From: Selaginella moellendorffii | Lineage: Eukaryota; Plantae; Lycopodiophyta | NCBI RefSeq assembly: GCF_000143415.4 | Contig: NW_003314263.1 | Location: 1,242,165-1,306,164, forward strand | Direction of reading: 5' to 3' | Length of the DNA: 64,000 bases | Part shown: positions 19,588-64,000 of the stretch, piece by piece | Layout: each line of letters begins with the position of its first letter | How positions within the stretch are numbered: the stretch's first letter is position 1 | The notes under the pieces: generated by a model | Databases searched by the model: none | The model's input: only the letters and a program-made list of their open reading frames with translations | What the model was told of the DNA's origin: nothing | Made by a program: the position numbers and the translations under genes

Positions 19588-19960
19588 CTGCGCGCTCTGG
19601 TCCTGGGAGAGAGTGCTTGAGACAGTGCTTGCAGGTGGCTACCGAGAGGACAATGCCCGAGGAGGAGCAGTCGAGTATCCATGTCGAGTTGAGGGGTGTT
19701 GCGTCTAGATTCTGCGTGGAGTGGAGCTGAAAAGTTTGCTGAGCAGATACTTCACCAACGCGTTTGGCTTGAGGAGCTCGCTAGCTGTCAAAGACATCAG
19801 TACTGTTGCTAACCTTGTCGAAAAAATAGTTTAGGAACGAAACGTAAGTTCCAGTTCCTCGTAGAAACAAGCTGGCGACGTGAGACAGAGATTTAACTTT
19901 TATGTTACCTGAAGATCTCGTGAAGTTTCCTGGTTCCTAGTTACCAAGGGGAACACAAAG

Positions 19961-21606
19961 CTACAAAGGAAAGTACCTCCCCAAAGCTTGCAGAAGCCTG
20001 GCGCGGTAGTTGCGTGGATGGATGATACAGTGTTCAAGAACACGCTTCCTGATGTCCTCCTCCGTCATGACGCATCCAAGGAGCTCCCGAATCCAATCCA
20101 TCACAAGACCTCGGATGATCCGAAAGTTGATTCGAATGTGTCTGTAGGCATTCCTCCGAGAAAACGTGGTAAGGTAGTCGATTACGGAAACAAAGATGTG
20201 CTCCTCATCGGTCTGGAAGACTAGAACCGAATAATCCGTGAGGCCCTGTCTCTGCAAAAAAAAAACAAGCAAAACAAGCAAAACAGTCGTAAATGAATCA
20301 AGCAAGGATGTTTTCCAGCTTACCTGGAGGAAGTGCGTGTCCCGCTCAATCAAACAAAACAGCATGCGGTGAGAGAAACTTGTCAGCAGCAAAGGCGTTG
20401 TGAAATAGGCATCGCTCTCTGGAACACTGTACTTGATGAACCCCTTGAGATCATGGTGTATCGTTGTGGCTTGAAGAAAGCTCCTGGGAGGATCTGTGGC
20501 CTCAATGACAAGGACGTTCAAACGTTCGCTCTCGCTGAAGGTCATCGGTGCGGGCCAGATCTATGACACGAAAAGCAATATGAGAAGTGCTTTCGAACTT
20601 TTTCAAGTGTTTATACCTCGTAAGCGCCCAGTATTATCGCGAACGATGTCTCCAGCTGCTGGGTGTACAGGAAGTAATCTTCTGCTATTCGTCGCAGCGC
20701 ACTCATATCACGGTGAGAAACCAGCTTCACGATGACTCGCTCGCTGGCAGTGGTGAAAAACTTCGCTCCACTCCTAGAGCTGGCCATCGTCCTCGGGCGT
20801 GCGGTGTTCAACGTTTCAACAAACTCCTTGTCATCCTTGAAGCCATGAACTTCCCGTAGAGTGCGAAACTGTGTGGGAAAGAGAACGTTGACGAATCCAT
20901 CGATGCCCCCGAACGAGTACTCTGGCTTGTCCCCAGGAACTTGGTGCGTAAGGTACTTCGTGAGAACGGGAAGCCACTGCGGTGGGGGAGTCTGAAAACG
21001 AAAGTTTACGTGAGCAGTGAGCAGTGAGTGAAGTTCCAAATCAAACCAAATGTACGCTGGTAGAGTTCTCGTTCACGATATTCTTCTGAAGGCGCTTCAT
21101 CGCGCGGATCTGTTTGGGGAACACAGCCGTGACGTTGCCACTGCAATCAGCATAGAAACGAATCCGCATAGGATCGGCATAAGAAATCACGGGAAAGCTT
21201 GCAATCTCGACGAGTTAAATCTCGAGAATCCGCGTTAGGACCGGGATAAGAAGCAAGAAACCACTGGAAAGCTTGCAATCGGGATAAGAAGCAAGAAGTC
21301 TGTGGAGAAACAAAGTAGAAACCATGAATCGGGACAGCTCGGGGTCTAGGAAACGAGAAAGCACTAGAAAGCTTGCAATCGGGACAGGAAACACGAAATC
21401 TCTGGAGAGACAAGCGTCGAGAATGCATAATCACCATGAATCGAGAGAGAATCGGCAAGAAAGCTTGCATACCTCGCCCGAGACGATGGATCATGACAGT
21501 ATCGCGTAGGCTCCCTGGCCATTGCCGCGTCGAATGCGACGCTGAGCAAGAATGGCGCAATCGCGACGCAGACGATCGCCATCGCGCAAACCATCGCCAG
21601 CGCCAT
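19961..21606 (-). CDS. Minimal FAB1/PIKfyve-like phosphatidylinositol-phosphate kinase domain protein with N-terminal hydrophobic signal, copy A (~373 aa)
   Basis: Predicted exons 21606-21473, 21140-21056, 20991-20617, 20560-20324, 20251-19961 (GT-AG, phases compatible). PIPK motifs in order: FPTQFRTLRE, SSRSGAKFF..SERVIVK, DLKG, DTHFL...TDYSVLV, VIDYL, IIHP.NYRARL...YF. Confidence 0.72.
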
Positions 21607-21748
21607 CGCTCCGCAACCAAGGCATGCAAAATAAAACCCAAATTTCAAACGATGGATGGTACAAGTTAGCGCCAAAACCCCAAACGTACGGAAATGGGCC
21701 AATGCTAAAATTAGTGGACGTTTTTAGGGTTCTTCGCGAGAGAGAGGG
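21607..21748. promoter_or_regulatory. Putative bidirectional promoter between the kinase-like and phosphatase-like genes
   Basis: Only 142 bp separate the divergent ATGs. Contains a site-II motif TGGGCC (21695-21700) and a telo-box-like TTAGGGTT. Confidence 0.5.
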
Positions 21749-23037
21749 ATGGATTCCAAGGTGCTACACCTTGTGCGCCATGGCCAGGCCTTCCACAACG
21801 TCCAAGGTGAGATTCTACTGCAAATGAGGAGCTCCTGGAAGATTTTCCTGGACGGGAGATGGCGGCGCCTCACGCTCAAGCACATCTTGAGGGCTTTTCG
21901 ATGCCTGTGGCTTCTCTTGTGCTGCATCGTTTCCCCAGCGCCTCCTCGTCCCTCCTCCTCCCCAGCTGCTGTGATGCCCATTTACTACGAGCACGCCGAC
22001 GCGAGCCTCACGGCTACTGGATGGGAACAAGTAAGTCCTTTCCTTTCCCTTTGCTCCATTCATTTGGTAAATGATCGATCGCTCTCCTTCAAGGCTGAGT
22101 TTCTTCACAGGGAATTCAGGATTTCCGGATTGAGAGACCGAGTGGAGCTTGTTGTGGTGTCGCCCTTGACTCGGTAGTGTGATTTCTCCTCTCGAGAACT
22201 CTTCTAAGTTTGCCTTCCAGGACGCTCCAAACTGCATCTGGGATCTTTGGAGGAGGGAATTTCACTGATACCACTGATCAACTAGCAGCTCCTCTGATGG
22301 TAGACAACGTTGGACGGTGTCCACGACCAGCCATCTCCAGTGCAAACTCCCCTCCTTTCGTAGCACTGGAGCTTTGCAGGGAGAAATTGGTATGTTGGCT
22401 CTCCCATATTTTTTCTCTCTGTCAATGTAGCTAGTTGACGCGAAGTTTTGATGAACAGGGTACCATGCCATGCGATCAGAGGAGTCCCAGGAGCAAATCC
22501 GAAATTCAGTTTCCAGGGATTGGCTTTTCGAACGTAAGGATCATTCGACTCGATCGAGTTGTGTGACTTGATCCAACTCTGTTTCTCTTCTCTATCAGAT
22601 CGAACAGGACCAGGACGAGCTGTGGAAGCCTGACAGAAGAGAACTAGAAGAGGAGCTCGACAAAAGGGCGAGAGCTTTTCTAGAATGGTACGTGGGCAGT
22701 CTGCGAAAGCTGTTGTAAGTTTCTGATCAAGCTTGCAGGCTATGGAGTCGTGGAGAGGAGGAGATTGCCGTCGTCTCCCACGCAGGCTTTCTGACCAACC
22801 TTGTGACAAAGTTTGGCAACGAAGCTGTGAACAAGACAGTGTAAGCGGCGTGTTTGGATGCTAGATTTGCTTGGTACTTACACTTGTGCGATTTAGGTTT
22901 GCGAACTGTGAGCTTCGTAGCGTGAGATTGAGGTGAGTCATCGTAGTTTTGTTCTCGAGACCTTAGATCTTGGCGTTTTTTTGCTCAGGAAAATAGTCAC
23001 GGGCTCGGACTATGCATTTGAGTTGACCGCAGCGTGA
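21749..23037 (+). CDS. Phosphoglycerate-mutase-like histidine phosphatase, copy A
   Basis: LHLVRHGQAFHN, DASLTATGWEQ, VVVSPLTRTLQTA, ELCREKLGTMPCDQR, EIAVVSHAGFL, FANCELRS. Multi-exon, frame intact to TGA 23035-23037. Confidence 0.85.
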
Positions 23038-23664
23038 ATCCATCCAAAGTGAGCCATGGATTCTAAAAGAAAATCTTCTTTTCCTAACTTTATATTGAGA
23101 ATCTAGCATCCTCGTCCCGCCAGGAAAATGCTCGGACTATGCATTTGAAGAGACTGCAGCGTGAATCCATCCAAAGCGAGCCATGGATTCTGAAAGAGTT
23201 CTTTTGCTAACTTCAAGCTAGAAGCTTGAAGTTATTATTCATGTAGTCAATCTTAAAACGTATCTATATTTAGCTAGGGCAAAGTTAATATAGCGGCAGA
23301 AAATAATTTAAAATAAATTTAAGGGAGGGGATATACCTTATCATGTAATAGGTAGAAAATAATTAAATAATTTACTATAACAACGATTGGTTTGTTTAAT
23401 AGTATTGTTATTCCTACTTATTAATCTAATTGATCAAATAAAAATTTATAATTATAAAGATGTTTATAATTTATAAACACAAGATTAAGATGGTAGAATA
23501 AAAAATAATATACTAGAAAGTATTTAAGAAATTTTATAAATTATAAACATAAATACAAGATTAATCTTAATAAATAACAACTGTTAGATGGTAAAATATC
23601 CTAGAATATTCAAGAATATTCTAGGTATATTCACTACCATCCCAAAAGCTCTGTTGGGCCAAGA

Positions 23665-24570
23665 TAAATAAATCTTCTTTTCTAATTTTAGAATGTTAGA
23701 AATTTTTATTGTATACAAGATTAAAATTATATAAACTTTGCTACTATTCATCTCTAGAGTAATGCACAATAATGCAATTAGAGAATAATGCATATGTTGG
23801 GGAAGTTAAAATCATTTTTCATCATCATGAAATTTAAATTTGAATTTGTTTTTATTGCCTTTCCAAAAAGGTACAAAACCCTAAACATATCCACAAGATT
23901 GGTGCCAACCTTTTAAAACAATTGAGTTTTCACAAAATCAAAGAATTATACCAAAGAATAATAGGTTTTATAACTGGTTTGGTGAAGTTATAATTTAATT
24001 GTGTACTGAGTTAACTTCTTTACTATCTGAATTGTAATGATGCCTTTAACATTCATAGTTTACTAAATAATAATAGAATTTCTATTATGTATACCCTTAT
24101 TGTCGTAATCTATATGATTACATAGTGTGATAAAATTATTATAAAACTATTGATTTTATATCAAATTATAATATGCAGAAAGATATAGCATACCTAAAAT
24201 AAATAAATCTTCTTTTCTAATTTTACAATTTTTAAATTTTAATTTTTATTGTATACAAAGTTAAATTTATCTAAAATTTTCTACTATTCATCTCCAAATA
24301 AATGCACAATAATGCAAATAGATAATAATGCAAGTGTTCAGGAAGATAAGATCATTTGTTATCATCATTAAATTTGGATTTGATGTTTTTATTGCTTTTA
24401 TAAAAATGTTCACAACCCTAAACACATCTACAGGATTGCTGCCATGCTTTAAAAGCAATTGAGTTATCACAAAAACAAAGAATCATAGACTACCAATAAT
24501 AATAGGTTAGTTTGGAGAAATTATAATTTTAATTTATCTGAACTGTAATGATGCATAGTTTACTAATATG
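23665..24570 (+). repeat. Diverged AT-rich tandem duplication (~530 bp period); mirrored in the right arm
   Basis: AATAAATCTTCTTTTCTAATTTTA...CTACTATTCATCTC...AATGCACAATAATGCAA occurs at ~23665 and ~24200. Confidence 0.7.
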
Positions 24571-27500
24571 ATCTGAATTTCTTCTGGTTTTACATTTAGA
24601 AAACATACATAAGATGAATACATAACCAATTAGAAAAAAATGTGCATTCTTATTTAAAAACCTTTTCCCTTTATATTTGAACTTCTATATAATCATCTTT
24701 TGAATTGTTCTTTTTTGTTGCATATAACTCACTATACATTTTTGCAAATTCATGCCCTCATGAATAAAAGTTAATAACCATAACTTTCCTATAGCAAGGA
24801 TCCATGCTCTGCTGGGAATGTATCTTGGTTGGCAAATTTATTATGGAACTTAAGATGGTTTAGAATATTTGTCATTTGGATATCATGCCATGAGAGATAG
24901 CAATGAGTAGTTTATTTCAAAGATAAACAATTATTAAATTTTCCATACATTCTATATATTTTATAGACCAGTTTTAAGTCATTTTAAAATTGTAGTGTGG
25001 AGTCAATTAAATATAAGTATGTAGCATCAAGTGTTTTTAATTTACATTTTGCTGTTAATTGTGTCAAACTTTTTTCTTTAGTTGTGTGTGTATAAAGGAC
25101 CTAATACACCTAGCTTGGCTAGGTAATACACTAATTATAGTACTATAGCATATGGACCATCCATTCTTGTATATAAGTAGGGGTCTAAACCCCAATTAAT
25201 ATACCTATTTCTACATCCTGAGCACTCACAAGATAATTTTAAGGGAGAGGATATACCTTATCATGGAATAGGTAGAAAATAATTAAATAATTTACTATGC
25301 TTTACATGTAACAATGATTGGTTTGTTTAATAGTAATGTTATTCCTATAAAATTTATAATTATAAATATGTTTATATATTATAAACACAAGATTAATCTT
25401 ATTGCATATCAACCATTAGATGGTAAAATAAAAAAGAATATACTAGAAAGTGCTGAAGAATGTTTATAAATTATAAATACAAGATTAATTTAAATGAATA
25501 ACAACCAAAACTATATAAATATAAATTTGAAGGTATAAGGAATATACTTTGTATAGTTTGGTATATATATTAATATGTGCGAACTAGATAAAAAAGTTCC
25601 TTTTCAAATATCACAAAGACCTTTCCACACATATCTCACCTCACTTCCATCAAATCTGTCTACAACCCATCTAAACATGATTATCCTTTTGAACAACACC
25701 TTCAATCTCTCCATCCCTTTATGTAGTTAGCTTAGGGTATAAAACATAAGATCCTAATAAAGTGAATTTTGCAAGCTCTTCCTTGATCAACCATTTCTGT
25801 GACCTTTTGCATCCTCTTTTAGATCCTATGTAAAGAATCAACTCCTTGAGATATTGTAAACTAAATGATCCCTCGAAATCATGATCAAAATGATAAAGAA
25901 TTTGCTAGATGAAACCAAGTTTAGGACTGAGTTGAAGACTATGTCTGAAACCCTGAGACTTGAGATCGGGTCCAAGATCAAGTCCAAAATTAAATCCAAG
26001 ATTGAGTCTAAATACTAATATATGTTATAGAGTGAAAGGGGGCATTATAGATGTTCCAAAAGTATAATAAAAATAGTGAAGATAAAGACTTAGCTTTGAA
26101 ATGAACTCTCTAGTGCCCCTCAAAAAAGTGCTTAAGAGTAAGTCTTATTCCCAAAAGGGAAACCAACTACATTGCTCATAACTTAGGTGGAATGGTGCCT
26201 CATTTGAGTACCATATGGCTCATTGGTCTTTGCCCCTTTCTAGGGGATTGAATAATAAGGGTACCCATACCATGCTATTAAGCCACAATGTTTCCCCTTG
26301 GGATCTTAAACTAAAAAATGCATATGAGATTTGAGATTGAAAAGGTTTTATGAATAAATCTTATTGTACTAATGGATGTCAAAAACTTGAAAATTTGGTG
26401 TTCTTAGTTGTTTGTGTCTATGGGGAGTGTAGTTGAACTTTAAGTTTAGTTTACTCTAGGAAAGGAAATTGGGAGAGAGTTTGGGAAATTGGAAAAGGAA
26501 AATTTGTGGTTTACATTTTGTTAATGATTTATATTAAAACATTTTACCTTACAAGTAAAGATCACATTAACCTTTCCAAAACAAGATTGAAGTCTCTCCA
26601 AACTCTTGTACACAAGCACCAAATTCTTCTCACTCCATTTACTAATACCAGAATAGAAAGATTGATTGATCCTTCCATTGTATTTTGTACCGAAGTCCCA
26701 TAATTGATCCTTCCATTATATTCCATATGAATTCAATTTTTAGGGGTAAAAATATATCTTGTTCAAGGGTATATTATATTTTAAATAGCCACTAATTAAT
26801 GGGAATCGGGCTCACTCCAATACCATATATAATGCATCTTATCTCTCCCCTTAAGCTAATTGGAAAAGAGGCAATTGCTTAATAAAAAATCTTTTAATGG
26901 CCCTATTTATTCCCCAAGGTTTTAAGGATCTACAATGACAATATATTTAAATTTCATCCCATAATCATATGCACTACAATGGCATAGGTAAGCTTCTTTC
27001 ATTTTTTTCAATTTTTCATTTCACTTAGCTGTAGATTAAATAAGTTCTTGTAAAGGAGCTTAGACTACATTTATTTTTTGGGTTATTCTCTTGTTTTTAA
27101 GGAGGCTCAAATCTTAAGCCAAGTAAAGTAGGCTAAACTCAACAAGTTGATTACAAGGATATTTAAATTTGCTACTAGAGTGGGAGTGGGAAGCACTTTT
27201 TTAAGGGGCACTAGAGAGTTCCTTTAAAGACTATCTTCACTATCTTTATTATATTTTTGGAACATCTTGCAATGCCCCCTTTCTTTAGGATATTATCACT
27301 TTGGGCTTTTACCCCACAACCTATATTAATATTTGGACTCTGACTTAGTCTCAAACTTGATTTTAAACTTGGTCTTGGACCCAATCTCGGATTAGAGTCT
27401 CGAACGTAGTCTCAAACTTGGTCTTAACCTTGGTTTCATCTAATAAATTCTATATGGTTTTTATCATGATTTTGAGGGATCTTTTAGTCTCCACACCCCA

Positions 27501-27736: not shown

Positions 27737-30700
27737 TGTAAGCGACTAAATTTTCCATTCTACTTTAGTCACTTAACCACACCTTCGACCACTTGGAGGA
27801 GTCTCATTCACAACCTCCATCAGTCCAATTCAGGACTTGGGACTTGCTAGCCCCAAGAATGGCATCCATGCCACTCAACACTTGCACCTGGTCCAAGTGC
27901 TCCACGTGTCCGGTCCCAAGACCGACACCCAAAGGTACCACTGACATCTCGGCCCGTTACGCTAAGGCCATGCCCACCTTTGCTGCACTAGTGGTCCAAT
28001 ACCACTTGCATCACCATCCCGTCTCTCCAAGACTGGGCCCTCTGTCCACGAGTGGTCATCCTAGATCCACTCCTTAGCATCCTTAGGATGCCCACAGACC
28101 TAGGGAATCGCCTTCCCCAAAGTCCCTTTGTCAGTTCCTACCAAGTCCCTTTCTGCCCCTGGCCGTGTTTGCCAACACCGCCACTGGATCGAGGCCCACA
28201 GGCCCGACCACTAAGTCCCATGGTCCTCTGGGACTTCCTCACCACACGACTGTGTCCTTGGTCACTACCCCAGAGGACTGCTCCTCTTCCTTTCCACAAT
28301 CTAGGCCTTTGGGACAACATTTTGGAACACCGTGGCCTTACGCAAGCCACCTGGGTACTCTCCCTGCCTTTCGCCTTTAGGTGCTCTAGCCATGGGCTTA
28401 GAGCGAGGTTCCATTGAGCCACGCCTGGTATCCAAGTAGGTAGTGCCACCCACACTTGGACTGGGAGCATCGGCCAGTCGATCTCCCGGGGGAACTAGAG
28501 CCGGCTCTTGAACACTTCACCAAGCCACCCCGCTTGTCGGTCCGTATTCACTCTAGTCTTGGACTTCCCAGTGGTCAGTTCATCACCCAACACTGGGTCT
28601 GGCCTTCCTGGGCCAAACTGGCCTTTCCTGGCCAAACTGGCTCCACTGCAGTCCTCCCCCCTTACTATACTTTTGGAGCTCACCAAACCCCCCAGGGTCT
28701 GGGAGACGAACGCTTTGGGCTTTCACCCTCTCAGACTCGAACTCGGACTCGGACTCGGACTCGGACTCGGACTCGGACTCGGAATCGGACTCGGACTCGG
28801 GCTCGGTCTCAGCCTTGGCCTCGGTCTCAGTCTCGGTCCCGGTCTCGGTCCCGGTCTCAGTCCCGGTCTCGGTCTCGGTCTCGGTCCCGGTCTCGGTCTC
28901 GACCTCGGACTCCATCTCGGGTCCTTCTCGGACTCCGTCTCGGCCCATCTCGGACTTCATCTCGGACTCCGTCTCGGTCCATCTCAGACTCCATCTCGGG
29001 TCCATCTCGGACTCCGTCTCGGTCCACCTCGAACTCCATCTCGGACTCCATCTCGGGTCCATCTCGGACTCCATCTCGGACTCCATCTCGGGTCCATCTC
29101 GGACTCCGTCTTGGTCCACCTCGGACTCCATCTCGGACTCCATCTCGGACTCCATCTCGGACTCCATCTCGGGTCCATCTCGGACTCCGTCTCGGTCCAC
29201 CTCGGACTCCACTTCGGGTCCATCTCGGACTCCATATCGGACTCCACTTCGGACTCCATATCGGACTCCACTTCAGGTCCATCTCGGACTCCAACTAGGG
29301 TCCGTCTCGGACTCCATCTCGGACACTTCCACGTGTCATATGTTGGTCCTTTTTGGGTCCCTTTTTGGAGCCTTGCTTATTGCTCGCTCCTTGAGCACTT
29401 TGTTGGGAGTTCCACTCCTGCTCTCGACCTTCCAAGTCAGAGCTTTTAGTCCAAATGTGTTACACTCGTTTGGGCTTTCGCTTCGGCCACTACCACGTGG
29501 CACCCTTTCTGGCTCCACTTTGGGGCCTAGGGATTTTGTGTCTCACAACTCCACCACCCATAGACGAAGCTCAATGTCCTCATCGAACGGTAAACCATTT
29601 TATAAAGTAACACCCGCATGTGTTACCATTTCCATCCTTGGCACCTAGCCAACATTTGTCAATGGTTTGAAATTGAAGGCTCACTATGCCTTCTCCATAT
29701 TTGTCAATGGTTTGACACCAAAGGCTCCCCATGCCTTGCCCATCCTATAAGGAGGATAGTCTCTCCAACTTAGAGACTCACTTGACCACCTAGGGTGGGT
29801 TGCTCCTTTTTATTGGTTCAGTTCTCGCTAAACCTGTTAGAGACACCCTCTCTAACTCAATTCCACTACTCATTCTTGAGTAGTCACCGATTCCATTGAT
29901 CTACCTTTGCACTTTGGAACGTTTACTTTTGACTTCTTGAAGTCAATTTCCTAGGTGTCTCCGACACCTTGCCTTGCACATTTTGTGCAACTCCACTTCC
30001 TCTCCTAAGAAGTTCTCTACTCGAGGGCACCCTCATCCTCTTTTCTATTTTTGTGCCACCATTGGCATTACGTTCCATTTATTATTATTTGTGCTAGGGC
30101 TGTCCACGGCCCTATCTTTTGGCTACTTTGCCGCTCCTCACTTGGAGCTTTTTCTTCGCCAAATCGGAGCACTTGGGAATCTATCCTTGGAAGTCCACTT
30201 CCCTTCCCACAATCCGTTAGCACCCAACACGTTAGTGTTCTTGGCTTAACTTTGCCATTTGGTTTCTTTCCCATGATTCCCATGGCTCTTTTCTTAGCCA
30301 TTAGTCTTTTGCTCCTATCCTTGATTGTTGTACCTAACAACATCGGATCATTACCTCCATTCTCGAGGTATCCTCTTGATTCCATAGCAAAGACTTTACT
30401 TTGCCAAGTCCAAAGGGTGCTCACCCCTAGTACGTCACTTTAGCATTTCCTGCTATGGGCTTTATCCATGGCCCAACTTTTGAGACCCTCCCTTGGATCT
30501 TTCATAGAGGCCACTTTCCTCGGACTTACTATGCCATAGCCGTGACATAGCTCATTTCCCATAGGTGCTCTTCCCACTTGGTCACCTTGACCAAGCCACA
30601 CCATTATCAGTAGTTCAAATCAACACTTTGAACTAGGAATCATATCCTTTAACCCAAACAAAGACCTTGTCCGTGTTCAACCACAAGATCAACTAGTGAT

Positions 30701-37744: not shown

Positions 37745-37818
37745 AGTCATTTTACTCGTGAACAATGTTGCAGCTGTCAAAGTCGAAAGCTGCAACATTG
37801 TTCACGAGTAAAATGACT
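37745..37818. repeat. Perfect 31-bp inverted repeat with 12-nt loop
   Basis: AGTCATTTTACTCGTGAACAATGTTGCAGCT (37745-37775) and its exact reverse complement (37788-37818). Confidence 0.9.
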
Positions 37819-40253: not shown

Positions 40254-40505
40254 AATAAATTAGTGATTATAGAAAATGATATACTTTATAACTTAAAATA
40301 GAAGAGTTGAATAGCTCCAGCCATTTTATCTTGTAAATTAGTTATACTTTTATCAATAATCTTATGATACTTATTACACATTCATCTATGAATCTAATCA
40401 TATTGAGTTGTTACTTAGCTCAGATATAGTCTAAGATTTGATATCATAATTTAGAATACTTCTTTTTACACTAATAATTTGTGCAAATAACGTCTACGCT
40501 TCCAG

Positions 40506-43700: not shown

Positions 43701-44564
43701 CAAAATCTCAAAAGGAAACACCATGGCATAATAACCTAATATAGGTACCTCTATTTCTCAATCCCCTAGAAGGGGAGAGGACAATTGAGTCATATGGTAC
43801 TCAAGTGAGGCACCACTCCATTTAAGTTGAGAGCACTAAAGCTGGTTTCTTTTTTAGGAGTGGTAGTTACTTTTAAGCACTTTCTTGAGGGGCACTAGAA
43901 AGTTCCTTTCAAGACTAAGTCTTTATCTTTGCTATTTTTATTATACTTTTAAAACACCTTATAGTGCCTCTTTTCTTTAGGATATTATCACTTCGAGCTT
44001 TCACCCTACAACCTATATTAGTCTTTGGACTCGGCCTTCAATTTGATCTTGGACTTGGTCTTAGACTTGATTTTGGACTTAATCTTGGACCCAATCTTGG
44101 ATTTTGAGGACTCGGATGCGGTCTCAAACTTGGTTTTAGACTCGGTTTTATCAGATAAATTCTATATTGTTTTGATTGTGATTTCAAGAGATCTTTTAGC
44201 CTAAAACATTTTAAAGAGTTGGTTCCTTACATAAGATCTAAAAGAGGATGCAAGAAGTCACATGAGTGGTTAATCAAGGAAGAACTTACAAAGTTCATTA
44301 CATACTAAACCAACTACATAAAGGGATAGAGATATTGAAGGTGTTGTTCAAGATGTTTAGATGGGTTATAGAGGCAAATTTAGACATGTGTGGAAAGGTC
44401 TTTGTGATATGTGAAAAGGAACCTCTTTATCCAGTTTGCACATAATTAATATATACCAGACCATATAAAGTATATTCCTTACACCTTCAATATATATTTT
44501 TGGTTTGCTTAAGAGAAACCTGTAGAGAGTATACTTGCTTAAGAGAAACCTGTAGAGAGTATAC

Positions 44565-49499: not shown

Positions 49500-50147
49500 A
49501 GCGTACGAGGTAAATTTATAAGCACCTCGAGAGCAATTCTCATATTGCTTTTCGTGTCATAGATCTGGACCGCACCGAGGAAGGGCGAGAGCGAACTTTC
49601 CAACGTCCTTGTCATTGAAGCCACAGATCCTCCCAGGAGCTTTCTTCAAGCCACAACGATGCACCATGATCTCAAGGGGTTTGTACAGTTCTGGGTGCCC
49701 GACAGTGACGCATACTTCACCACGCCATTCTCGCTCACAAGTTTCTCTCACCGCAAGCTGTTCTGTCTTGTCGAGCGGGACACGTACTTCCTCCAGGTAA
49801 TCTGGCTGGAAAACATCCGTGCTTGATTCATGTTGCGATTGTTTGGCGTTTTGCAGAGACAGGGGCTCACGGATTACTCGGTGTTGGTGTTCCAGACCGA
49901 TGAGGAGCACATCTTTGTTTCCCTGATTGATTACTTGTCGATTTACTCCTGGAAGACTGCCTACGGCCATGCTCAAATCAATCTAAGGATAATCAAGCGC
50001 CGTTTGCTGGATTGGATTCGCGTGCGCATGGGATGCATCATTACAGAGGAGATCATCAAGAAGAGAATGCAGGAGGACTGTGTGATACACCCCTGTAGCT
50101 ACCGAGCGAGACTGTTGAGAGGTATGGCAAGGTACTTCCCTTTGTAG
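48520..50147 (+). CDS. FAB1-like PIP-kinase domain protein, copy B (chimeric: 5' part identical to A, 3' part diverged; ~372 aa)
   Basis: Predicted exons 48520-48653, 48986-49070, 49135-49509, 49563-49796, 49857-50147. Frame intact; retains VIVK, DLKG, DYSVL and LIDYL. Confidence 0.72.
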
Positions 50148-53100: not shown

Positions 53101-54621
53101 GATAATAAACACTCTTTCCACTAATCAAATGTAACAATTTCAAACTAAAGCATTGGGTGTATAAAGTTCAAAGAGAAAACAATGATGAAATAAGTAACAT
53201 TCAATTCCTTGCAAAATATGCAAAAATTTATTTTTTCCAAGGTTTATTTTTTTTATTCCAAGTAAACAATGACAACAACCAACATTGCTACGTGATAAAG
53301 ATGTCCACTAAAGGACTAAAAAGTGTGGTTGACTTAGTTGACAAATGCAAAAAGTAAAAACTCTCAACTAATCTTGGATACATTTCAACTTTAATTATTG
53401 TGTACGTGAATAGGCAACAATAGGAACTTATATATATGACCACTAAGTAAAGAAACTTCTTCAAAAATGAAAAATTAATCATATTAAAACATTTATAAAT
53501 TGCATAAGTTATTGATTATTGCAACATGTGAGTTTAAAGTGGAGGATTGTGTGTTTCAGCATTTGTTTTAAATACTTCTCAATAACATGTACAAGCGCAT
53601 AATAGGTTTTGTACCTACTTTTCATGGTTTCATGGCTGATGAGGTTGACACTAATTGGAATATTGTTTAAAAAGTATATTTTGGAGGCCACAAAAAACTA
53701 AAAAAAGAGGACTTATATGTTTTCCACTTTCAGTAAAGTCTCTAAATGCACAAAAAAAATTACATTACACATGACTATCAACAAGAATACTTTAACTTGT
53801 GTCAACAGTGGTAATAGGTTGAGAGTTAGGAAGAGGCATAAGTTTATTTCAATAAGATCTAACAGTGGTAAGAAAGAAAGACAATTCAAAATGACAAAAA
53901 AATCCTTTATTTGTGGATTTCATGGTGGCAAGATAGAGAAATTTCTTTTTTAAGGTTTGGACTTGAATAGTGTTCCACAAATTTTTTTTTACCAATGCAT
54001 GTTATGATAACCTATTAGAAGCCCTACTCTAGTGCATTATATATAAATTATGTTTAGAGGGAAGATACATAGGATTGGGTCCAAGATTGTAGGTGTTTTA
54101 CACAAGGAAACATAATACACCAAAAAGTGTTAAAAAATGAGTAGCAAACATAACAAATTTCAACAAAAGTGTATCATGTTAGATTAGAGTGGCTACAGTG
54201 GAGACTACAAGACAACTTACAAGAAGAGTCAAGCAACAGATTTATATATTGTTGCCATTGATGATAACACATGCTAAAATTCATCAACAATAATGTGCCG
54301 ATTTGTGATTTTTCATTAAGAAAGAATTTGAACTTTGATGACACAAAATAACCATAACGACATATATGAGTAGTGAACTTCATGACTTTGTTGTGTCAAG
54401 ACCCCCAACAAGATCAAGACTGGAAAATGCTAAAGACAAAGAGAAAAAGCTAGTGAAAACAAAGAAGAGGCCTTAGACTGGTGTTGATTCAGATTGTGGA
54501 GAAAGGGAACAAGGCTAACCTATATATACTATAGGTTGATGAAGCTCCACCACTCTTGGATCGAGGACGGCCTAAATACAGCTGAGGTCGAGGAGGCGCC
54601 ACATCATCATCAGGAATGTGG

Positions 54622-54767
54622 CTCGAGACTCAGGAATCGGGAAGTGTCTCGAGACTCAGGAATCGGGAAGTGTCTCGAGAGTCAGGAATAGGGAAGTGTC
54701 TCGAGACTCAGGAATCGGGAAGTGTCTCGAGAGTCAGGAATAGGGAAGTGTCTCGAGAGTCAGGAAT
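54622..54767 (+). repeat. 26-bp tandem repeat (~5.5 copies) in the LTR U3 region; also at 59888-60033
   Basis: CTCGAGA(C/G)TCAGGAAT(C/A)GGGAAGTGT units start at 54622, 54648, 54674, 54700, 54726 and 54752. Confidence 0.9.
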
Positions 54768-54843
54768 GTGGTCTGCAGGTCAGGAATCCGGCGAGAGTCA
54801 GGAATGTGGCAAGAATTGGGGGATTCCTGATAGCACCCCCTCC

Positions 54844-57800
54844 TCAAGAACGAGTGGAACGAGGATGTGAACGAGAACGAAGAGGAGGATGAGATGAGCG
54901 GCGAGGGATGGGAGAGGGAGAAAAAAAATGAGGACTGGGACGAGAAGGATAGCGGCGGTGGAAGTCCTGAACAAGGTCAGGAGAATGAAGCAGGTTGTCC
55001 GCAGGTTCCCAAGTGCGTTCCTCAGGTCCGTAACCCTTCCAGTCCACCAGATAGTAGAGTTTAGACCGTGAAATCTTGGAATCAAGGATGTCCTGAACCT
55101 CGTACTCAGACCCATCCTCGAGCTACACTGGTGGAGGCGGAGGAATGACCCGATTTGGAATAGGACTGGGAATATAAGGCTCAAGGAGAGAGGAGTGAAA
55201 AACGGGGTGAATTTGATATGAGGAGGGAAGTGCAAGGCGATAAGTGACAGGATTAATGATGGCAGTGATAGGGAAAGGACCAAGGCGTTTGAAATCGAGT
55301 TTTGGACAGGGCCTGGTGGTGGAGATATTTCGCCTGAGGAGCCAGACTTTATCCCCGATATTTTAAGGGGGACAATCCTGACGATGGACATTGGCAAATG
55401 TTTTATGAGATTCCTGAGCACAATGGAGGTGGAAGGAGATGGAGTTGTGGATTTCCTGGAGGTTGGAGACAAATGCCTCAGAGCGGGGATTTGAACGAGA
55501 GGATTCAGATGGAGAAGGAAGTGAGAGATTGAATCGGGGATTTCGGCCAGAGTTCGCAAAGAAGGGGGAAACTCGAAGAGAGGAGTGAACAGAGTTGTTA
55601 TAGGAGAACTCAGCAAGGGGAAGGATATCGAACCAGTTATCCTGATGATAGTTGATGAAGCACCTCAAGAATTGTTCCAACGTCTGAATCGTTCGCTCGG
55701 ACTGCCCATCAGTTTGAGGATGATATGCCGAAGAGAGGTTGGCCTTCACTCCAAGCAGCTGCAAAAACCGTTGCCAGAAATGAGAGATGAACTAAGGCCC
55801 CCGATCCGAAACCACATCTGTAGGAATCCCATGAAGTCGGAAAATTTCCCTGAATACCAGTTTTGCCATGTCCTCGCCCGAAAACTCCTTGGTACATGGC
55901 AAGAAGTGCGCCATCTTTGTGAAGCGATCCACCACGACTAAAATGCTGTTGAAGCCTCTAGAACTCGGAAGATCACTCAAGAAATCCATGGAGATGGATT
56001 CCCAAGGACCTGAAGGGACCGAAAGGGAACGAAGCAAACCTGAAGGAAGGTGGCGAGGTACCTTATTTCGGGCACAAGTGTCACAGGAGGTAACAAAAGC
56101 TTTGATGTAGTCATCCATGTGAGGCCACCAAAAGTCCCGTGCAACTAGCTCATAGGTTTTCGCAATGCCGAAGTGACCAGCAGTCGGGCTATCGTGGCAC
56201 GCCATCAGGACCAACCTTCGAGTATCACCTTCCGGAACGTAAAGCTGCTCCCCACGGTACAATAAGCCATCTAAGAACTCGAACTCGTCAAATCGCCGGC
56301 AGTCGGGAGTCACTGGGTGTCCAGCCTGAAGATGGGGGAAAATGTCGCTAGCGAGATCATTGGATTGAAGATTGTTTCTGATTGCATCCATCAAGGAGGA
56401 GTCCTGAGGGGCCAGGGAAATTGCCATAACTTGAAGCCGATCAGGACCGAGGATAACTTGATCCTGTTGATCGAAGGCAGGATTACCAGGCTTGAGACTG
56501 AGATAGGAGCGCCTTGAAAGAGCATCAGGAAGGCCTTGAAACTTTCCAGGTCTGTACTTGATAACAAAGTCAAACCGACTCAGGAATTGTGCCCACCTTG
56601 CTTGACGACGGCTTAAAACTCGGGAAGTGGCAAAGTACTCGAGATTTTTGTGATCCGTCCAGACTGTTGTTTGATGGCTCGCCCCCTCCAAGAAACGGCG
56701 CCACTCTCCAAAGGAATCCACGATGGCAAGGAGCTCCTTGTCGTGGATTTCGTAATTGATCTCCGCAGGCTGGAATTTCCGAGAATGGAAAGCGACCGGA
56801 TGAAGTTCGTGATCCGCTCCAAGTTGAGACAGTACAGCACCAATGGCAAAGTCGGAGGCGTCAGCCTCGATGAAGAAAGGTTGTGAGGAATTAGCATGGA
56901 TCAAGACAGGAGCAGAACTGAAGGCCGCCTTGAGTGTGTCAAAGGCATGCTGGGCAGCAGCAGACCAAGAGAAGGGAACATCCTTGCGAGTGAGATGTGT
57001 GAGAGGAAGGACAATGTCAGAGTAGTGATCAATGAATTTGCGGTAGAAGTTGGCGAAGCCAAGGAAAACCTGAACGTCCGACATTGATTGTGGAGGCTCC
57101 CATTCGAGAATAGTCTTGACTTTAGCAGGATCCATTGTGATACCCTCAGGAGTGACAATGTACCCAAGGAACTCCACAGACTGCTGATCAAAGGAACATT
57201 TCTCAAGCTTCGCGTATAGACCGTGTTCTCACAGCTTCGCTAGCACCTTGCGAACATGTTCGTCATGCTCCTCCTGAGTTTTTGAGTAGATGAGGATGTC
57301 ATTGAGGTAGACGATCACCATCTGATCAAGAAACTCCCGAAAAACGTTGTTCGCCATGTGTTGGAAAACCGCTGGAGCATTTGTCAAGCCAAATGGCATG
57401 ACAGTGTACTCGAAGTGGCCATAGCGGGTTCGGAACGCAGTCTTCCATTCATCACCAGGCCGGATCCGGATCAGGTTGTATGCTCCACGGAGGTCAATCT
57501 TGGTGAAGAAGCGGGCACCGCCGAGGCGTTCCAACAAGTCCGAGATCAGGGGCAGCGGATAACGGTTCCGAACAGTCACCTTGTTCAAACCTCGGTAGTC
57601 GATGACTAACCGCAAGCTCCCATCCTTCTTCTTGACAAAGAAGACAGGCGCTCCAGCCGGGGACTGCGAATGCTGAATGTAGCCCGAGGCAAGGTTCTCA
57701 TCCACGTACTCTTTGAGGGCCTTAAGCTCGGACGGAGATAACCCGTAGATAGGCCCCCACGGAGGTGACGCTCCTTCCTGTAAATCAATGGGACAATCAT

Positions 57801-58617
57801 AAGGCCGATGAACAGGCAATACACTAGCTTTTTTCTTGTCAAACACATCCCCAAAATCATGATACTTCTCAGGAAGACTGACAGGAGAAACATGCAAAGC
57901 AAAAAGAAAAAGAGGTTCTTCATGAAGGAGTTCTTTCATAGTGATTGTGGAGATAGGAGAAGGGGTACGACTAAATGGAATGACGAGACGAGGATACTGT
58001 CCAGTGTAAGATGGAAGAGAGGAAAAAGAAGAGGATGAAAACTTCGTAGAGTCAGGAACAGAACCCCGACTTGAGTTTAGGGAACTTTTCCTGATTCGGA
58101 CTCGATTAACACCAGGGGAAGCCGTGGGAGATGGTGATGGGGGAGAGATGAGCTGTAAGTCCTTCCAACAAATCTGAGGCTGATGTAGTTGGAACCAAGG
58201 AAGACCGAGCACCACAGAGGAGGACTTGCTGTTGATGATGTTGAAGGCAATATCAGTGACGGTGGACCCGATGTGTACTCGAATGGGCAACGTTTCCCTA
58301 AGTCCAGAAGATGGAGACACAAAATGCCCGCCGATGCCTTCAACCCTCAGATCCCGTATGGTAGGAGAAAGAGGAACGTGATGTCGGGCAGCAAAGTCCG
58401 TGTCCATGAAGCAGGAAGTTGCACCCGAGTCCAGTAGCGCCAAAGCCTTGAGTCCTGATTGTCCGGTGAAAGAAAGGAGACATGGGACGCGGAAGTTGCG
58501 GGAATTGGTGGTGGCTTTGATGAAAGGTGGTGAGGAGCTTGATAAGGAAGAAAAGTGATTTTTATTTGGGGAGTCCAAACAGACAGCTCCTACTCTGTTT
58601 GGACAGGGTCGTTTCCC
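54844..58617 (-). pseudogene. pol: pol: protease, RT, RNase H, integrase, chromodomain; interrupted by in-frame stops
   Basis: LLDSGAT; [25 protein letters not shown]; YLND in place of YLDD; EADASDFAIGAVL; HX6H...CX2C; ISMDF/VVVDRFTK/SDRG; GPF; EYEVQDILD...YLVDWKGYGPEERTWEP. Stops at ~57229, 55792, 55363 and ~55124. Confidence 0.9.
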
Positions 58618-59561
58618 GACTGCAACAGAAGTGGACTTTGAGGCAGAGTGAACTCGAGCAATCGGGGAGGCTTCCTGGGACACATAGCTGCTTTGTGATT
58701 AGGATCAGCACAGTAGAGGCAAAGATTATGAGATATTCGACGTTGCCTCTCAGCAGGACTCAACTTCCCTCTAATGAGTCGGGGAGTACCAGAAATATCC
58801 ATCGGGACTGGAGCAGTAGGTTCAGGACTATGCCCCGAAGACTCAAGCTGGGATTCCTGAGTCTGGGACGGAAAAACAGCGGCGCGACGACTTTCCTGAC
58901 GACGTTCAAAGAGACGATTGTCACATCGAACAGCTTTGTTGATGGCGTCCGACAGGTCCTTGGGATCCTCCATGGTGAGCAACAAATCCTTGACACCGTT
59001 GTTGAGGCCGAAACGAAATTGGTCAATCAAGGCCCGCTCATCCCACTGAGTGTCCAAGGCAAGGAGTTAGAACTCTGCAGCGTAGATCGAGGCAGGACGA
59101 GACCCCTGAGAGAGACGTCTCATCTTTGTGGTAGCAGCCCGAACCCGATCCGTCTCGCCAAAACATGCTTCGAGCTTCTCTTTGAACAATTGAAGATCCA
59201 TCAGCTCCGGAACCACGACCCCTTTCATGCTCTTCTCTAGAAGAGGAGAAAACCATGACAAAGCTACACCCTCGAGCAACGTCCCAATCGCGCCGATTTG
59301 AGACTCGGGAGTGGGGTACCGCCGATGTTGAAGTGCAAAGATCAGCTCCATTTGGTTCAAAAATCCACGAAGCTCCGAACGCTTGCCTGAAAATTTCGCC
59401 GGGAAACTCACCTTCAGTTCAGGAACTTTGCTGGATCCTTGAGCCGAAAGTGAAGCAAGCTCTTGCTGCATGCGAAGAAGGGTCGCCTTCAGCTCGGTAT
59501 TCTCAGACTGAATTTTTGCAAGGACTTCGGCAAAGAAATCAGGATGGCTTGGAGACTCCAT
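58590..59561 (-). pseudogene. gag: gag with CX2CX4HX4C zinc knuckle and one premature stop
   Basis: MESPSHPDF...PAKFSGKRSELRGFLNQ...LSQGSRPASIYAAEF*LLALDTQWDERALIDQFRFGL...PVPMDI...[16 protein letters not shown]. Confidence 0.85.
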
Positions 59562-61848
59562 TGGCAAGAAGAAAGAAAAGAAAAGGGGAAAAAAGACAAA
59601 GGCAATCAAATAATCAAAACGAGCTAAAAGAAAAGCAAAAAACACAATCTGAATCAAACTGTCAAGACCCCCAACAAGATCAAGACTGGAAAATGCTAAA
59701 GACAAAGAGAAAAAGCTAGTGAAAACAAAGAAGAGGCCTTAGACTGGTGTTGATTCAGATTGTGGAGAAAGGGAACAAGGCTAACCTATATATACTATAG
59801 GTTGATGAAGCTCCACCACTCTTGGATCGAGGACGGCCTAAATACAGCTGAGGTCGAGGAGGCGCCACATCATCATCAGGAATGTGGCTCGAGACTCAGG
59901 AATCGGGAAGTGTCTCGAGACTCAGGAATCGGGAAGTGTCTCGAGAGTCAGGAATAGGGAAGTGTCTCGAGACTCAGGAATCGGGAAGTGTCTCGAGAGT
60001 CAGGAATAGAGAAGTGTCTCGAGAGTCAGGAATGTGGTCTGCAGGTCAGGAATCCGGCGAGAGTCAGGAATGTGGCAAGAATTGGGGGATTCCTGACATG
60101 TTGGGCTTTACATTGTGTAGAAAATAGGAAGGTTATATGCTATTTTTACTTGGAATGCGAGAAAAGAAAATGTGGGAAAGAACTTCTAAGGAATACATTG
60201 GCACCATATATCACAAGTTTTAGAATATATAAGGATAATAGAACACTCAAAACATTTTGGTTTTACAGTAATAGCATCCTCCACAGTTAAGGTACAGATA
60301 TTGTTGCATTTGGTGATGCACTAGAAAAATGGTTAGTTATAAAAGGTGTAAAGATTACTTTAGTAAAGCTTCACGATCTCAATACAATAAGGCTTATGCT
60401 AAGAGCTTTAGATGAACAATATCCTCTAACACAATTGCAAATGCCAATGGAACCCATTTTAGTAAATGAGGAATTTGTTCATATGTTTGCCTTGCATGGA
60501 AATTTGACACCTCCAGCAAGTAAGCTAACATTTTCTGATACTAATAATTAATTTTCTTATGAACAGACACTCCTTTATCTAACAACAAGACTCCACCCAT
60601 AATGAACCCTATCTCTGACAAAAAGATTCCAACTACACGAAATGGAATTTGAGTTTAACTAAGGAAAGTCTTTATGCTGTATTTTCATACATTGCACAAC
60701 TCACTTATCATGCATGCACACATTGAAAATGTCAACACATACAACAGTGAAGATAAGGAAGAAGTACTTCTAAATAACAAAAAGAGTAATTACAAAGTAA
60801 CCATAGGAATGGAACCTTTTTGTGCGCATCCAAACTTTCAGAAAGGCTTAAGCAAAAGCCATATGCAAACATTTGATCTACTTGTATTTCAATCAGTATA
60901 AAATGGATTCTATAGACATAATGATTATATAAGCAGCTTTATCAAAGAAACAAGCTCATCCCTGCAAAATGAGATGTGGTTAAAATAATGAAAGTCCTTT
61001 GCATTCTTAATTAAATATTATGTTGTTCTAAATAGAAGTATTTTGTATTATTAAAAGAATATCTCATGAATATTCCCTGATGTGGCAGGGACTCTCATTT
61101 GCAACGTGGAGGCCCTCGTGGCAAAAAGGATGTGATGATGTGGCCAGACAGCGTGGCCGAACCAAAAAAGATTTCAAAGTATGAAAACGTGTTCGGCACG
61201 CCCTCCGCCCGGATCACCTGATCATCTTCTGGTCGCTCAGGGATGGAGTTCATTTCCTTGTCGCCCGCCCACCGCTGCCACCACAGCCCCTGCCGCTTCC
61301 AATTTCCCTACCGCGGCCACTCCACTTCCCGAACAGTGATCTAGTTGCTCATCACATCACTCCCCACCCCCCAGCCAAAGCTTCCCATGGATGATCCCGC
61401 TTTGCTCAAGCACCATCCAGCAAAATCCTTGGGGAGGGAGAATTGCCCTCTCTTTGAAGGCGAGATCCTGGCGGACCTGGAGCAGGCGAGGGATCATGAC
61501 GCGACCTCACGGAGACTCAAATGAGAACGAGTTTTAACGGGAGGCCCAGAGGACAATGCCCGAGGAGGAGCAGTCGAGTATCCATGTCGAGTGAGGGGCG
61601 CTTTGCTAGATTCTGCGTAGAGTGAGCAGATACTTTTTCGGTCGCGCAATGACGACCAACGCATTTGGCTTGGCATGAGGAACTCGAATACTGTTGCTAA
61701 CCTTGTCGAAAAAATAGTTTAGGAACGAAACGTAAGTTCCAGTTCCTCGTAGAAACAAGCTGGCGACGTGAGACAGAGATTTAACTTTTATGTTACCTGA
61801 AGATCTCGTGAAGTTTCCTGGTTCCTAGTTACCAAGGGGAACACATAG

Positions 61849-63494
61849 CTACAAAGGAAAGTACCTCCCCAAAGCTTGCAGAAGCCTGGCGCGGTAGTTG
61901 CGTGGATGGATGATACAGTGTTCAAGAACACGCTTCCTGATGTCCTCCTCCGTCATGACGCATCCAAGGAGCTCCCGAATCCAATCCATCACAAGACCTC
62001 GGATGATCCGAAAGTTGATTCGAATGTGTCTGTAGGCATTCCTCCGAGAAAACGTGGTAAGGTAGTCGATTACGGAAACAAAGATGTGCTCCTCATCGGT
62101 CTGGAAGACTAGAACCGAATAATCCGTGAGGCCCTGTCTCTGCAAAAAAAAAACAAGCAAAACAAGCAAAACAGTCGTAAATGAATCAAGCAAGGATGTT
62201 TTCCAGCTTACCTGGAGGAAGTGCGTGTCCCGCTCAATCAAACAAAACAGCATGCGGTGAGAGAAACTTGTCAGCAGCAAAGGCGTTGTGAAATAGGCAT
62301 CGCTCTCTGGAACACTGTACTTGATGAACCCCTTGAGATCATGGTGTATCGTTGTGGCTTGAAGAAAGCTCCTGGGAGGATCTGTGGCCTCAATGACAAG
62401 GACGTTCAAACGTTCGCTCTCGCTGAAGGTCATCGGTGCGGGCCAGATCTATGACACGAAAAGCAATATGAGAAGTGCTTTCGAACTTTTTCAAGTGTTT
62501 ATACCTCGTAAGCGCCCAGTATTATCGCGAACGATGTCTCCAGCTGCTGGGTGTACAGGAAGTAATCTTCTGCTATTCGTCGCAGCGCACTCATATCACG
62601 GTGAGAAACCAGCTTCACGATGACTCGCTCGCTGGCAGTGGTGAAAAACTTCGCTCCACTCCTAGAGCTGGCCATCGTCCTCGGGCGTGCGGTGTTCAAC
62701 GTTTCAACAAACTCCTTGTCATCCTTGAAGCCATGAACTTCCCGTAGAGTGCGAAACTGTGTGGGAAAGAGAACGTTGACGAATCCATCGATGCCCCCGA
62801 ACGAGTACTCTGGCTTGTCCCCAGGAACTTGGTGCGTAAGGTACTTCGTGAGAACGGGAAGCCACTGCGGTGGGGGAGTCTGAAAACGAAAGTTTACGTG
62901 AGCAGTGAGCAGTGAGTGAAGTTCCAAATCAAACCAAATGTACGCTGGTAGAGTTCTCGTTCACGATATTCTTCTGAAGGCGCTTCATCGCGCGGATCTG
63001 TTTGGGGAACACAGCCGTGACGTTGCCACTGCAATCAGCATAGAAACGAATCCGCATAGGATCGGCATAAGAAATCACGGGAAAGCTTGCAATCTCGACG
63101 AGTTAAATCTCGAGAATCCGCGTTAGGACCGGGATAAGAAGCAAGAAACCACTGGAAAGCTTGCAATCGGGATAAGAAGCAAGAAGTCTGTGGAGAAACA
63201 AAGTAGAAACCATGAATCGGGACAGCTCGGGGTCTAGGAAACGAGAAAGCACTAGAAAGCTTGCAATCGGGACAGGAAACACGAAATCTCTGGAGAGACA
63301 AGCGTCGAGAATGCATAATCACCATGAATCGAGAGAGAATCGGCAAGAAAGCTTGCATACCTCGCCCGAGACGATGGATCATGACAGTATCGCGTAGGCT
63401 CCCTGGCCATTGCCGCGTCGAATGCGACGCTGAGCAAGAATGGCGCAATCGCGACGCAGACGATCGCCATCGCGCAAACCATCGCCAGCGCCAT
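61849..63494 (-). CDS. FAB1-like PIP-kinase domain protein, copy C (same as A)
   Basis: Same translated ORFs as copy A. Confidence 0.72.
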
Positions 63495-63636
63495 CGCTCC
63501 GCAACCAAGGCATGCAAAATAAAACCCAAATTTCAAACGATGGATGGTACAAGTTAGCGCCAAAACCCCAAACGTACGGAAATGGGCCAATGCTAAAATT
63601 AGTGGACGTTTTTAGGGTTCTTCGCGAGAGAGAGGG

Positions 63637-64000
63637 ATGGATTCCAAGGTGCTACACCTTGTGCGCCATGGCCAGGCCTTCCACAACGTCCAAGGTGAGA
63701 TTCTACTGCAAATGAGGAGCTCCTGGAAGATTTTCCTGGACGGGAGATGGCGGCGCCTCACGCTCAAGCACATCTTGAGGGCTTTTCGATGCCTGTGGCT
63801 TCTCTTGTGCTGCATCGTTTCCCCAGCGCCTCCTCGTCCCTCCTCCTCCCCAGCTGCTGTGATGCCCATTTACTACGAGCACGCCGACGCGAGCCTCACG
63901 GCTACTGGATGGGAACAAGTAAGTCCTTTCCTTTCCCTTTGCTCCATTCATTTGGTAAATGATCGATCGCTCTCCTTCAAGGCTGAGTTTCTTCACAGGG
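63637..64000 (+). CDS. Histidine phosphatase copy C (5' part; truncated by window end)
   Basis: MDSKVLHLVRHGQAFHN..., same as copy A. Confidence 0.8.
   Translation, partial: MDSKVLHLVRHGQAFHNVQGEILLQMRSSWKIFLDGRWRRLTLKHILRAFRCLWLLLCCIVSPAPPRPSSSPAAVMPIYYEHADASLTATGWEQVSPFLSLCSIHLVNDRSLSFKAEFLHR

Follow-up and report, generated by a model that had tools for sequence, protein, structure and literature searches.

Layout of the locus

A 64,000-nucleotide stretch of the Selaginella moellendorffii genome (contig NW_003314263.1, positions 1,242,165 to 1,306,164 of the forward strand; here called the window, position 1 being its first letter) carries a pair of genes, one encoding a PIPK-like kinase and the other a histidine phosphatase, which lie head to head and are present in three copies, A, B, and C. 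The window is part of scaffold GL377567.1 in the published Sanger assembly (GCA_000143415.2). An earlier note on this DNA, made from the sequence alone, had described a divergent kinase/phosphatase pair with a shared 142-bp spacer, 3 copies of that pair with B inverted, and intact reading frames throughout, the phosphatase of C being cut by the window end. This anatomy was borne out in all its parts. The spacer measures exactly 142 bp from ATG to ATG (21607-21748, 46% GC) and is presumed to be a bidirectional promoter; the same head-to-head arrangement with a 142-bp spacer recurs in all 4 kinase-bearing copies, the fourth of which lies on the other haplotype. Self-comparison returns A, an inverted B, and a direct C, and exon models derived from RNA, when projected onto each copy, leave the frames of the kinases and phosphatases intact in all 3.

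The genes have entries in the databases. An exhaustive protein search with kinase exon 3 as query gave a 100% identical match to P0001 (EFJ35903.1, SELMODRAFT_404223), and the predicted proteins P0001, P0007, and P0009 correspond to SELMODRAFT_404223, 404219, and 404224, all on GL377567.1. Sequence at the loci around these 3 proteins (L001, L002, and L004) is 100% identical to the window, over lengths of 21.7, 21.9, and 12.4 kb, respectively. Copy A, as delimited by self-BLAST and a repeat search, spans 19642-25582 and consists of the kinase gene, the spacer, the phosphatase gene, and an AT-rich tail; it is syntenic with the other-haplotype scaffold, GL377662.1, and a weaker A/B homology extends beyond it to 26499. 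Copy B (44565-50155) is inverted relative to A in the self-comparison, with weaker homology running down to 43516. Copy C occupies 61545-64000 in direct orientation, where the window end cuts the unit about 960 bp short. In L004, which reaches past this point, C is whole: a unit of 3.4 kb that is equivalent to 19642-23070 of A and ends just past the phosphatase stop codon.

A diverged PIKfyve-like kinase

Kinase A (SELMODRAFT_404219; 19961-21606) lies on the minus strand and comprises 376 codons plus a stop, with its ATG at 21606 and its stop codon at 19961-19963. RNA contigs place its exons at 21606-21473, 21140-21047, 20991-20617, 20560-20324, and 20251-19961, separated by 4 minus-strand GT..AG introns of 332, 55, 56, and 72 nt (run X6). 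Kinase B (SELMODRAFT_404223; 48520-50147, plus strand) has 375 codons plus a stop in exons 48520-48653, 48986-49079, 49135-49509, 49563-49796, and 49857-50147; its three 5' exons are identical to those of A, and the final 2 have diverged yet remain intact. The protein encoded by kinase C (SELMODRAFT_404224; 61849-63494, minus strand) is identical to that of kinase A. The GenBank kinase models P0001, P0007, P0009, and P0010 (380, 426, 412, and 525 amino acids) splice around the true stop codon or run past it. Their 3' ends are wrong, because an RNA contig covering 19907-20251 passes unspliced across the stop codon and the protein end that this defines, ...HPRNYRARLLQALGRYF (...GRYFPL), aligns with the PIKfyve C-terminus.

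The Pfam family PIP5K (PF01504) matches P0001 with 48.2 bits against a cutoff of 27 (E 1.1e-12), over profile positions 12-165 of 288 only. It is the sole domain match in the kinase, with no FYVE, chaperonin-like (Cpn60_TCP1), or other domain detected. Among PDB entries the best match is to the kinase domain of PIKfyve (7k2v_P, E 2e-11), with PIP4K and PIP5K behind it, and the kinase segments SRSGAKF, VIVK, LTDYSVLV, and S(V/L)IDYL align with GKSGAAF, FILK, IIDYSLLV, and GIIDYI of PIKfyve. The PIPK catalytic motifs are kept in order, with the first Gly residues of the loop replaced (SSRSG versus GGKSG). The first 25 to 30 residues are hydrophobic, reaching a Kyte-Doolittle maximum of 2.74 over residues 3-21, and could serve as a signal anchor or a long signal peptide.

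Few relatives of this protein were found. A HMMER search of 1.84 billion cluster representatives returned only the kinase's own cluster at E<1e-10, and a word-based search of 5.8 billion proteins returned only P0001 and P0007. The nearest match outside Selaginella, P0004, forms one exon of an ordinary FAB1 gene, whose domains are FYVE, Cpn60_TCP1, and PIP5K, and P0006 is a piece of an ordinary protist PIP5K gene; no histidine phosphatase adjoins either of them on the 2 contigs that were fetched. Two further candidates were rejected as spurious, P0002 because it matched through a repeated 18-residue motif and P0003, which is named as a bacterial cellulase-family glycosylhydrolase. An AlphaFold2 model of the kinase built from a 5-sequence alignment had a mean predicted local distance difference test score (pLDDT) of 37 and a predicted TM-score of 0.28; it is poor because there are so few relatives, and it was discarded.

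The likeness to FAB1/PIKfyve lies in the order of its aligned elements, which run from the G-loop region and the catalytic Lys through DYSxLV and IDY to the C-terminal P..YR.R....YF. In other respects the 2 differ. FAB1 proteins are about 1,400 to 2,100 amino acids long and carry FYVE, CCT/Cpn60_TCP1, and conserved-cysteine regions, whereas the Selaginella kinase is around 30% identical, has only 376 amino acids, and begins with a hydrophobic N-terminus in their place. The multi-domain architecture by which type III PIPKs are defined (FYVE in most of them, CCT/Cpn60_TCP1, a conserved Cys-rich region, and the kinase at the C-terminus) was not found in this protein, where PIP5K is the only match. 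Judged from its sequence, the kinase appears to derive from the FAB1/PIKfyve kinase domain and would work like it, while falling outside the architectural definition of the family. We consider it to be, in all likelihood, a stand-alone and highly diverged offshoot of the FAB1/PIKfyve (type III) PIPK domain that is known only from S. moellendorffii.

A histidine phosphatase with a lineage-specific insertion

Phosphatase A (21749-23037, plus strand) encodes 293 amino acids from an ATG at 21749 to a stop codon at 23035-23037. Its exons lie at 21749-22030, 22094-22173, 22221-22389, 22459-22533, 22599-22687, 22739-22840, 22897-22932, and 22989-23037, and the 7 plus-strand GT..AG introns between them, of 47 to 69 nt, are seen in RNA contigs from 3 runs. 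Phosphatase B (47089-48377, minus strand) encodes an identical protein. Phosphatase C has only its start in the window (63637-64000, plus strand); it is complete and intact in L004 and differs from A by one amino acid change, N to D.

A search with the other-haplotype protein P0011 returned 424 homologues at E<=1e-5, and nearly all of those that bear a name are called "phosphoglycerate mutase-like protein 1." Identity to seed-plant homologues is 41% to 47% over more than 87% of the length, and to a liverwort homologue about 45%. In a 64-sequence alignment R10 and H11 (LVRHGQ), N17, R121, E171/E175, and H246 (SHAGF) are invariant. An AlphaFold2 model reached a pLDDT of 82.7, and the Foldseek matches listed for it are histidine phosphatases or domains of the histidine-phosphatase fold. 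The nearest solved folds (Sts-1, tau55-HPD, TIGAR, and RosC) are generic branch-1 enzymes and so do not point to a particular substrate. Atlas look-ups gave generic family names only, a PDB sequence search with the first open reading frame of the phosphatase gave no match, and a literature search found no functional studies of the plant phosphoglycerate mutase (PGM)-like family. On alignment and model together, the protein is a branch-1 histidine phosphatase (PF00300) of the plant PGM-like protein 1 family. It has catalytic residues and fold in common with plant PGM-like protein 1 (At5g64460-type, His_Phos_1, related to the yeast broad-specificity phosphatase YOR283W) and differs from it in an added helical insertion of 53 amino acids, a shorter C-terminus, and its presence in at least 5 copies over 2 haplotypes.

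The insertion occupies codons 20-72 (21806-21965, plus strand), directly after the RHGxxHNV motif, and is in frame and bounded by GT..AG. These ends raised the possibility of a retained intron, which was ruled out: the insertion is left unspliced in RNA contigs X11 and X19, its protein sequence is conserved with a second Selaginella paralogue, P0014, and its ratio of non-synonymous to synonymous divergence (omega) is 0.29 (p 3e-4). It is coding sequence, because it is kept in RNA, shared with P0014, and constrained. Neither homologues of other plants nor the Selaginella paralogue P0019 have it. In the AlphaFold2 model it is predicted to form 2 partly hydrophobic helices.

Transcription of the pair

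Both genes are real, transcribed, and spliced, with RNA contigs from 3 runs carrying GT..AG joints on the correct strand for each gene. Kinase and phosphatase are both transcribed in 2 of these runs, and the third has phosphatase contigs with no kinase contig. The depth of the phosphatase RNA contigs is about 10 to 60 times that of the kinase, where contig depth is an unreliable guide to transcript level and the reads do not distinguish the copies. On the side of the shared spacer, the phosphatase RNA contigs include one that begins at 21738, and those of the kinase one that extends to about 21556 or beyond.

Duplication history and selection

The 3 copies are related to one another in very different ways. 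Between A and B there are 9 mismatches in 4,690 positions (20614-25303, 99.8% identity) and none at all over the 3.6 kb from 20627 to 24239, whereas identity is 74% to 85% over 19953-20613 and 75% to 78% over 25517-26499. Because the near-identical 4,690 bp are flanked on both sides by such diverged sequence, we infer that A and B form an old inverted duplication with a recent gene-conversion tract of about 4.7 kb. Between A and C there is a single mismatch in 2,312 positions (19801-22112, for the part of C inside the window). Copy C has its own unique flanks on both sides and 3 private phosphatase differences, one of which is common to both other-haplotype copies and to an independent DNA run of 2024. 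It would be a recent direct duplicate of 3.4 kb. The likely order of events would begin with an old inverted duplication of the adjacent gene pair that gave copies A and B; the central 4.7 kb or so would then have been homogenised by gene conversion between the inverted arms, and a recent 3.4-kb direct duplication would have produced copy C. Capture of the pair by a transposon was considered and is unlikely, the A/B, C, and solo units differing in their end points.

The diverged 3' half of the kinase offers a view of selection on A and B since they separated. Synonymous divergence (dS) there is 0.76 and non-synonymous divergence (dN) 0.17, giving an omega of 0.22 (p 1e-12). Phosphatase A and the solo phosphatase of the other haplotype differ at 12 synonymous and 4 non-synonymous sites (omega 0.10, p 1.5e-5). 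A dN/dS comparison had been among the checks proposed at the outset, and it shows purifying selection on both genes. Both kinase paralogues appear to have been kept functional since the old duplication.

The other haplotype and an older paralogue

The assembly reportedly contains both haplotypes. Scaffold GL377662.1 (L003) shares 9.8 kb of syntenic sequence with the window's left flank, 97.6% identical (a divergence of about 2.4%), and it bears one kinase-phosphatase pair plus a solo phosphatase. The solo gene (L003 4470-5753, inverted) is intact at 293 amino acids and retains 86 bp of the spacer with no kinase; it lies about 2.9 kb beyond the L003 pair, tail to tail with the paired phosphatase, and 2 B-lectin receptor kinase genes adjoin it. 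In-frame deletions have altered the paired phosphatase of this haplotype, a frame-shifted stretch within the insertion being among them. The locus is structurally polymorphic between the haplotypes. A further variant of the pair, about 1% different, is present in the independent 2024 DNA run (X1), where 12 of 29 variants match the other haplotype. Contig depth in X1 was dropped as an estimate of copy number, flank depth being ambiguous and X1 being a different genotype.

An older phosphatase paralogue, P0014, lies on GL377565.1 (L005 10001-11237) and has the same 53-amino acid insertion and the same eight-exon structure. It is 58% identical to P0011 by BLASTP, and its dS from the cassette copy is about 1.5. 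A PPR gene lies 390 bp upstream of it, and tblastn of the locus found no kinase beside it.

Functional pair or passive linkage

The earlier note had gone on to propose a co-regulated writer/eraser module or a toxin-antidote pair, with passive co-duplication as a caveat. Of this interpretation the anatomical part stands, the genes being divergent, co-amplified, and intact with a very short shared promoter region, and the writer/eraser or toxin-antidote part found no positive support. The caveat is the better-supported reading: passive co-duplication of 2 adjacent genes in the S. moellendorffii lineage accounts best for the data and is, in our judgment, probable. The head-to-head linkage would then be a by-product of a very compact genome, both genes having been carried along in each duplication. 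To the left of the cassettes lie a YGGT gene with a plastid-type leader (18352-19002) and LOB, PPR, Arf, TIP41, and ABC1 genes, and the spacers between the neighbouring PPR/Arf/TIP41/ABC1 genes measure 93 to 141 bp; short intergenic spacers of about 90 to 140 bp are usual in the compact genome of S. moellendorffii. Tandem duplicates make up 6,693 of its 22,285 genes, or about 30% (PMC5750206). A functional module is unsupported because phosphatases of the same kind exist without a kinase (the solo gene of L003 and P0014), because RNA depths are unequal, and because short spacers are the usual state. Conservation of the linkage in relatives, which the earlier note had proposed to look for, cannot be shown because the kinase has no orthologues elsewhere: no kinase relative was found outside S. 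moellendorffii, and the linkage was found nowhere else. Being head to head is in itself no evidence that the phosphatase reverses the product of the kinase.

Several observations weigh against passive co-duplication. The pair has been held together through 2 separate duplications, and the A/B pair has persisted since a dS of about 0.76. The tract homogenised by conversion takes in precisely the shared promoter, all of the phosphatase, and the 5' half of the kinase. The kinase is seen only beside the phosphatase, in all 4 sequenced copies. The haplotypes differ in copy number, as selfish or fast-evolving loci do. That the copies are nearly identical is known from a single Sanger assembly, in which reads from near-identical repeats can become blended.

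The strongest of the alternatives, which we nevertheless regard as rather unlikely, is a functional co-regulated module in which the kinase, as a membrane-anchored PIPK like those of type III, adds phosphate to a lipid or small molecule, the phosphatase takes it off again or regulates the kinase, and their common 142-bp promoter balances the two, the pair having been amplified as a unit for that reason. It would fit the constancy of the 142-bp head-to-head arrangement in every kinase-bearing copy, the retention of the pair over a dS of about 0.76, the expression of both genes, and the purifying selection on them. It would also fit the retained catalytic residues, which include the SRSG loop, the Lys of IVK, DYS, and IDY in the kinase and R10, H11, N17, R121, and H246 in the phosphatase, and the partly hydrophobic helical insertion predicted near the phosphatase active-site motif could contact membranes. 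Set against these points are the phosphatases of the same subfamily that stand without a kinase neighbour, the excess in phosphatase contig depth (about 10 to 60 times, a poor measure) together with a run that has no kinase contig, and the genome-wide norm of short spacers. The nearest phosphatase folds, Sts-1, tau55-HPD, TIGAR, and RosC, also speak against it, and we know of no branch-1 histidine phosphatase that acts on phosphoinositides. A broader and more speculative form of the idea, that the orphan PIKfyve-like kinase, anchored in a membrane, and the insertion-bearing phosphatase are a dedicated opposing pair of the Selaginella lineage, working as a phospho-lipid or phospho-metabolite switch or as a toxin-antidote and kept by the shared 142-bp promoter and gene conversion, seems to us more doubtful again.

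It is improbable that an error of assembly or of haplotype accounts for part of the triplication, with C a misplaced duplicate of A or A and B a blended consensus. The absence of any difference between A and B over 3.6 kb and the single one between A and C in 2.3 kb are unusual for independent loci, and the assembly's reported inclusion of both haplotypes would leave room for such an error. But the 3' half of kinase B, at a dS of 0.76, and its diverged flanks are not those of an allele or a copying error, and A and B do differ at 9 sites. The allelic haplotype has in addition been assembled separately on GL377662.1, about 2.4% divergent over its 9.8-kb flank, and C has unique flanks on both sides and 3 private phosphatase differences, one of them seen independently. 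Least probable of all, and by our estimate very improbable, is a selfish toxin-antidote (killer-rescuer) element in which the orphan kinase is harmful without abundant phosphatase and the unit spreads by gaining copies. An orphan, species-restricted kinase in tight linkage with its presumed antidote, haplotypes that differ in copy number and structure, extra solo antidote copies, and a presumed antidote expressed far above the presumed toxin would all be in keeping with this, but every one of these points is equally expected of any young tandem array. Both kinase paralogues, moreover, show the purifying selection of ordinary genes (omega 0.22) and nothing that suggests an arms race, and the phosphatase is a member of a housekeeping-type family present in all land plants.

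Comparison with known systems

The arrangement of A and B resembles, on a small scale, that left by arm-to-arm gene conversion in palindromes such as those of the human Y chromosome: A and B are inverted arms, and their central tract of 99.8% to 100% identity has sequence of 74% to 85% identity on either side. The differences are that the Selaginella tract is only about 4.7 kb long with a 19.5-kb spacer between the arms and that conversion would here be deduced from a single assembly. Plant toxin-antidote pairs such as the rice killer-protector loci offer a likeness by analogy only, in 2 tightly linked genes of which one is an orphan and in structural polymorphism between haplotypes.

The genes themselves are not new, being hypothetical proteins in GenBank and "PIPK domain-containing" or "phosphoglycerate mutase-like" in UniProt, and a literature search found no papers that mention these SELMODRAFT locus tags. 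What this analysis adds is a correction of their gene models, evidence that they are expressed and under selection, a history of conversion between the copies, and the structural difference between haplotypes. If the pair is a passenger of duplication, it is a small and clean example of concerted evolution within an inverted repeat of a plant genome, and it also illustrates local gene making in a genome that lacks whole-genome duplication. Of the two genes the kinase holds more interest, as a FAB1/PIKfyve-type domain apparently stripped of its regulatory domains, confined to one lycophyte, and held under purifying selection, and it could reveal what a minimal type III PIPK does and where. Should both proteins prove to act on the same substrate, they would make up an "operon-like" writer/eraser pair in a eukaryote, of which, to our knowledge, there is no description.

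DNA around the cassettes

Pseudogenised gene pieces had been thought to adjoin the cassettes. None were found, and the DNA in between looks like transposon sequence. Two LTR (long terminal repeat)-like direct repeats of 1.8 kb (27737-29547 and 33520-35380) are 93% alike and lie 5.8 kb apart; they contain arrays of a 12-nt unit (28726-29324 and 34509-35146) with strong negative GC skew, and their open reading frames have no Pfam match. Their appearance is that of LTRs belonging to a non-autonomous element, not of gene pieces. Directly to the left of copy C, on the minus strand, is a Ty3/gypsy LTR retrotransposon (54394-60096) whose Gag, protease-reverse transcriptase, RNaseH-integrase, and last piece fall in 4 separate open reading frames. 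Its insertion is young, because its 437-bp LTRs differ at one base.

Blocks of 23% to 31% GC (23300-27500, 36000-47000, and 50200-54300) lie between genes whose GC content is about 50%. Some of this AT-rich sequence falls within the A/B repeat unit, and the blocks contain degenerate internal repeats, as between 23310-23581 and 25230-25505 or between 23661-23967 and 24196-24508. On the far side of copy C, about 3.8 kb past the window end, the adjoining gene (L004 3998-5695) is called at 565 amino acids, with no Pfam match on record.

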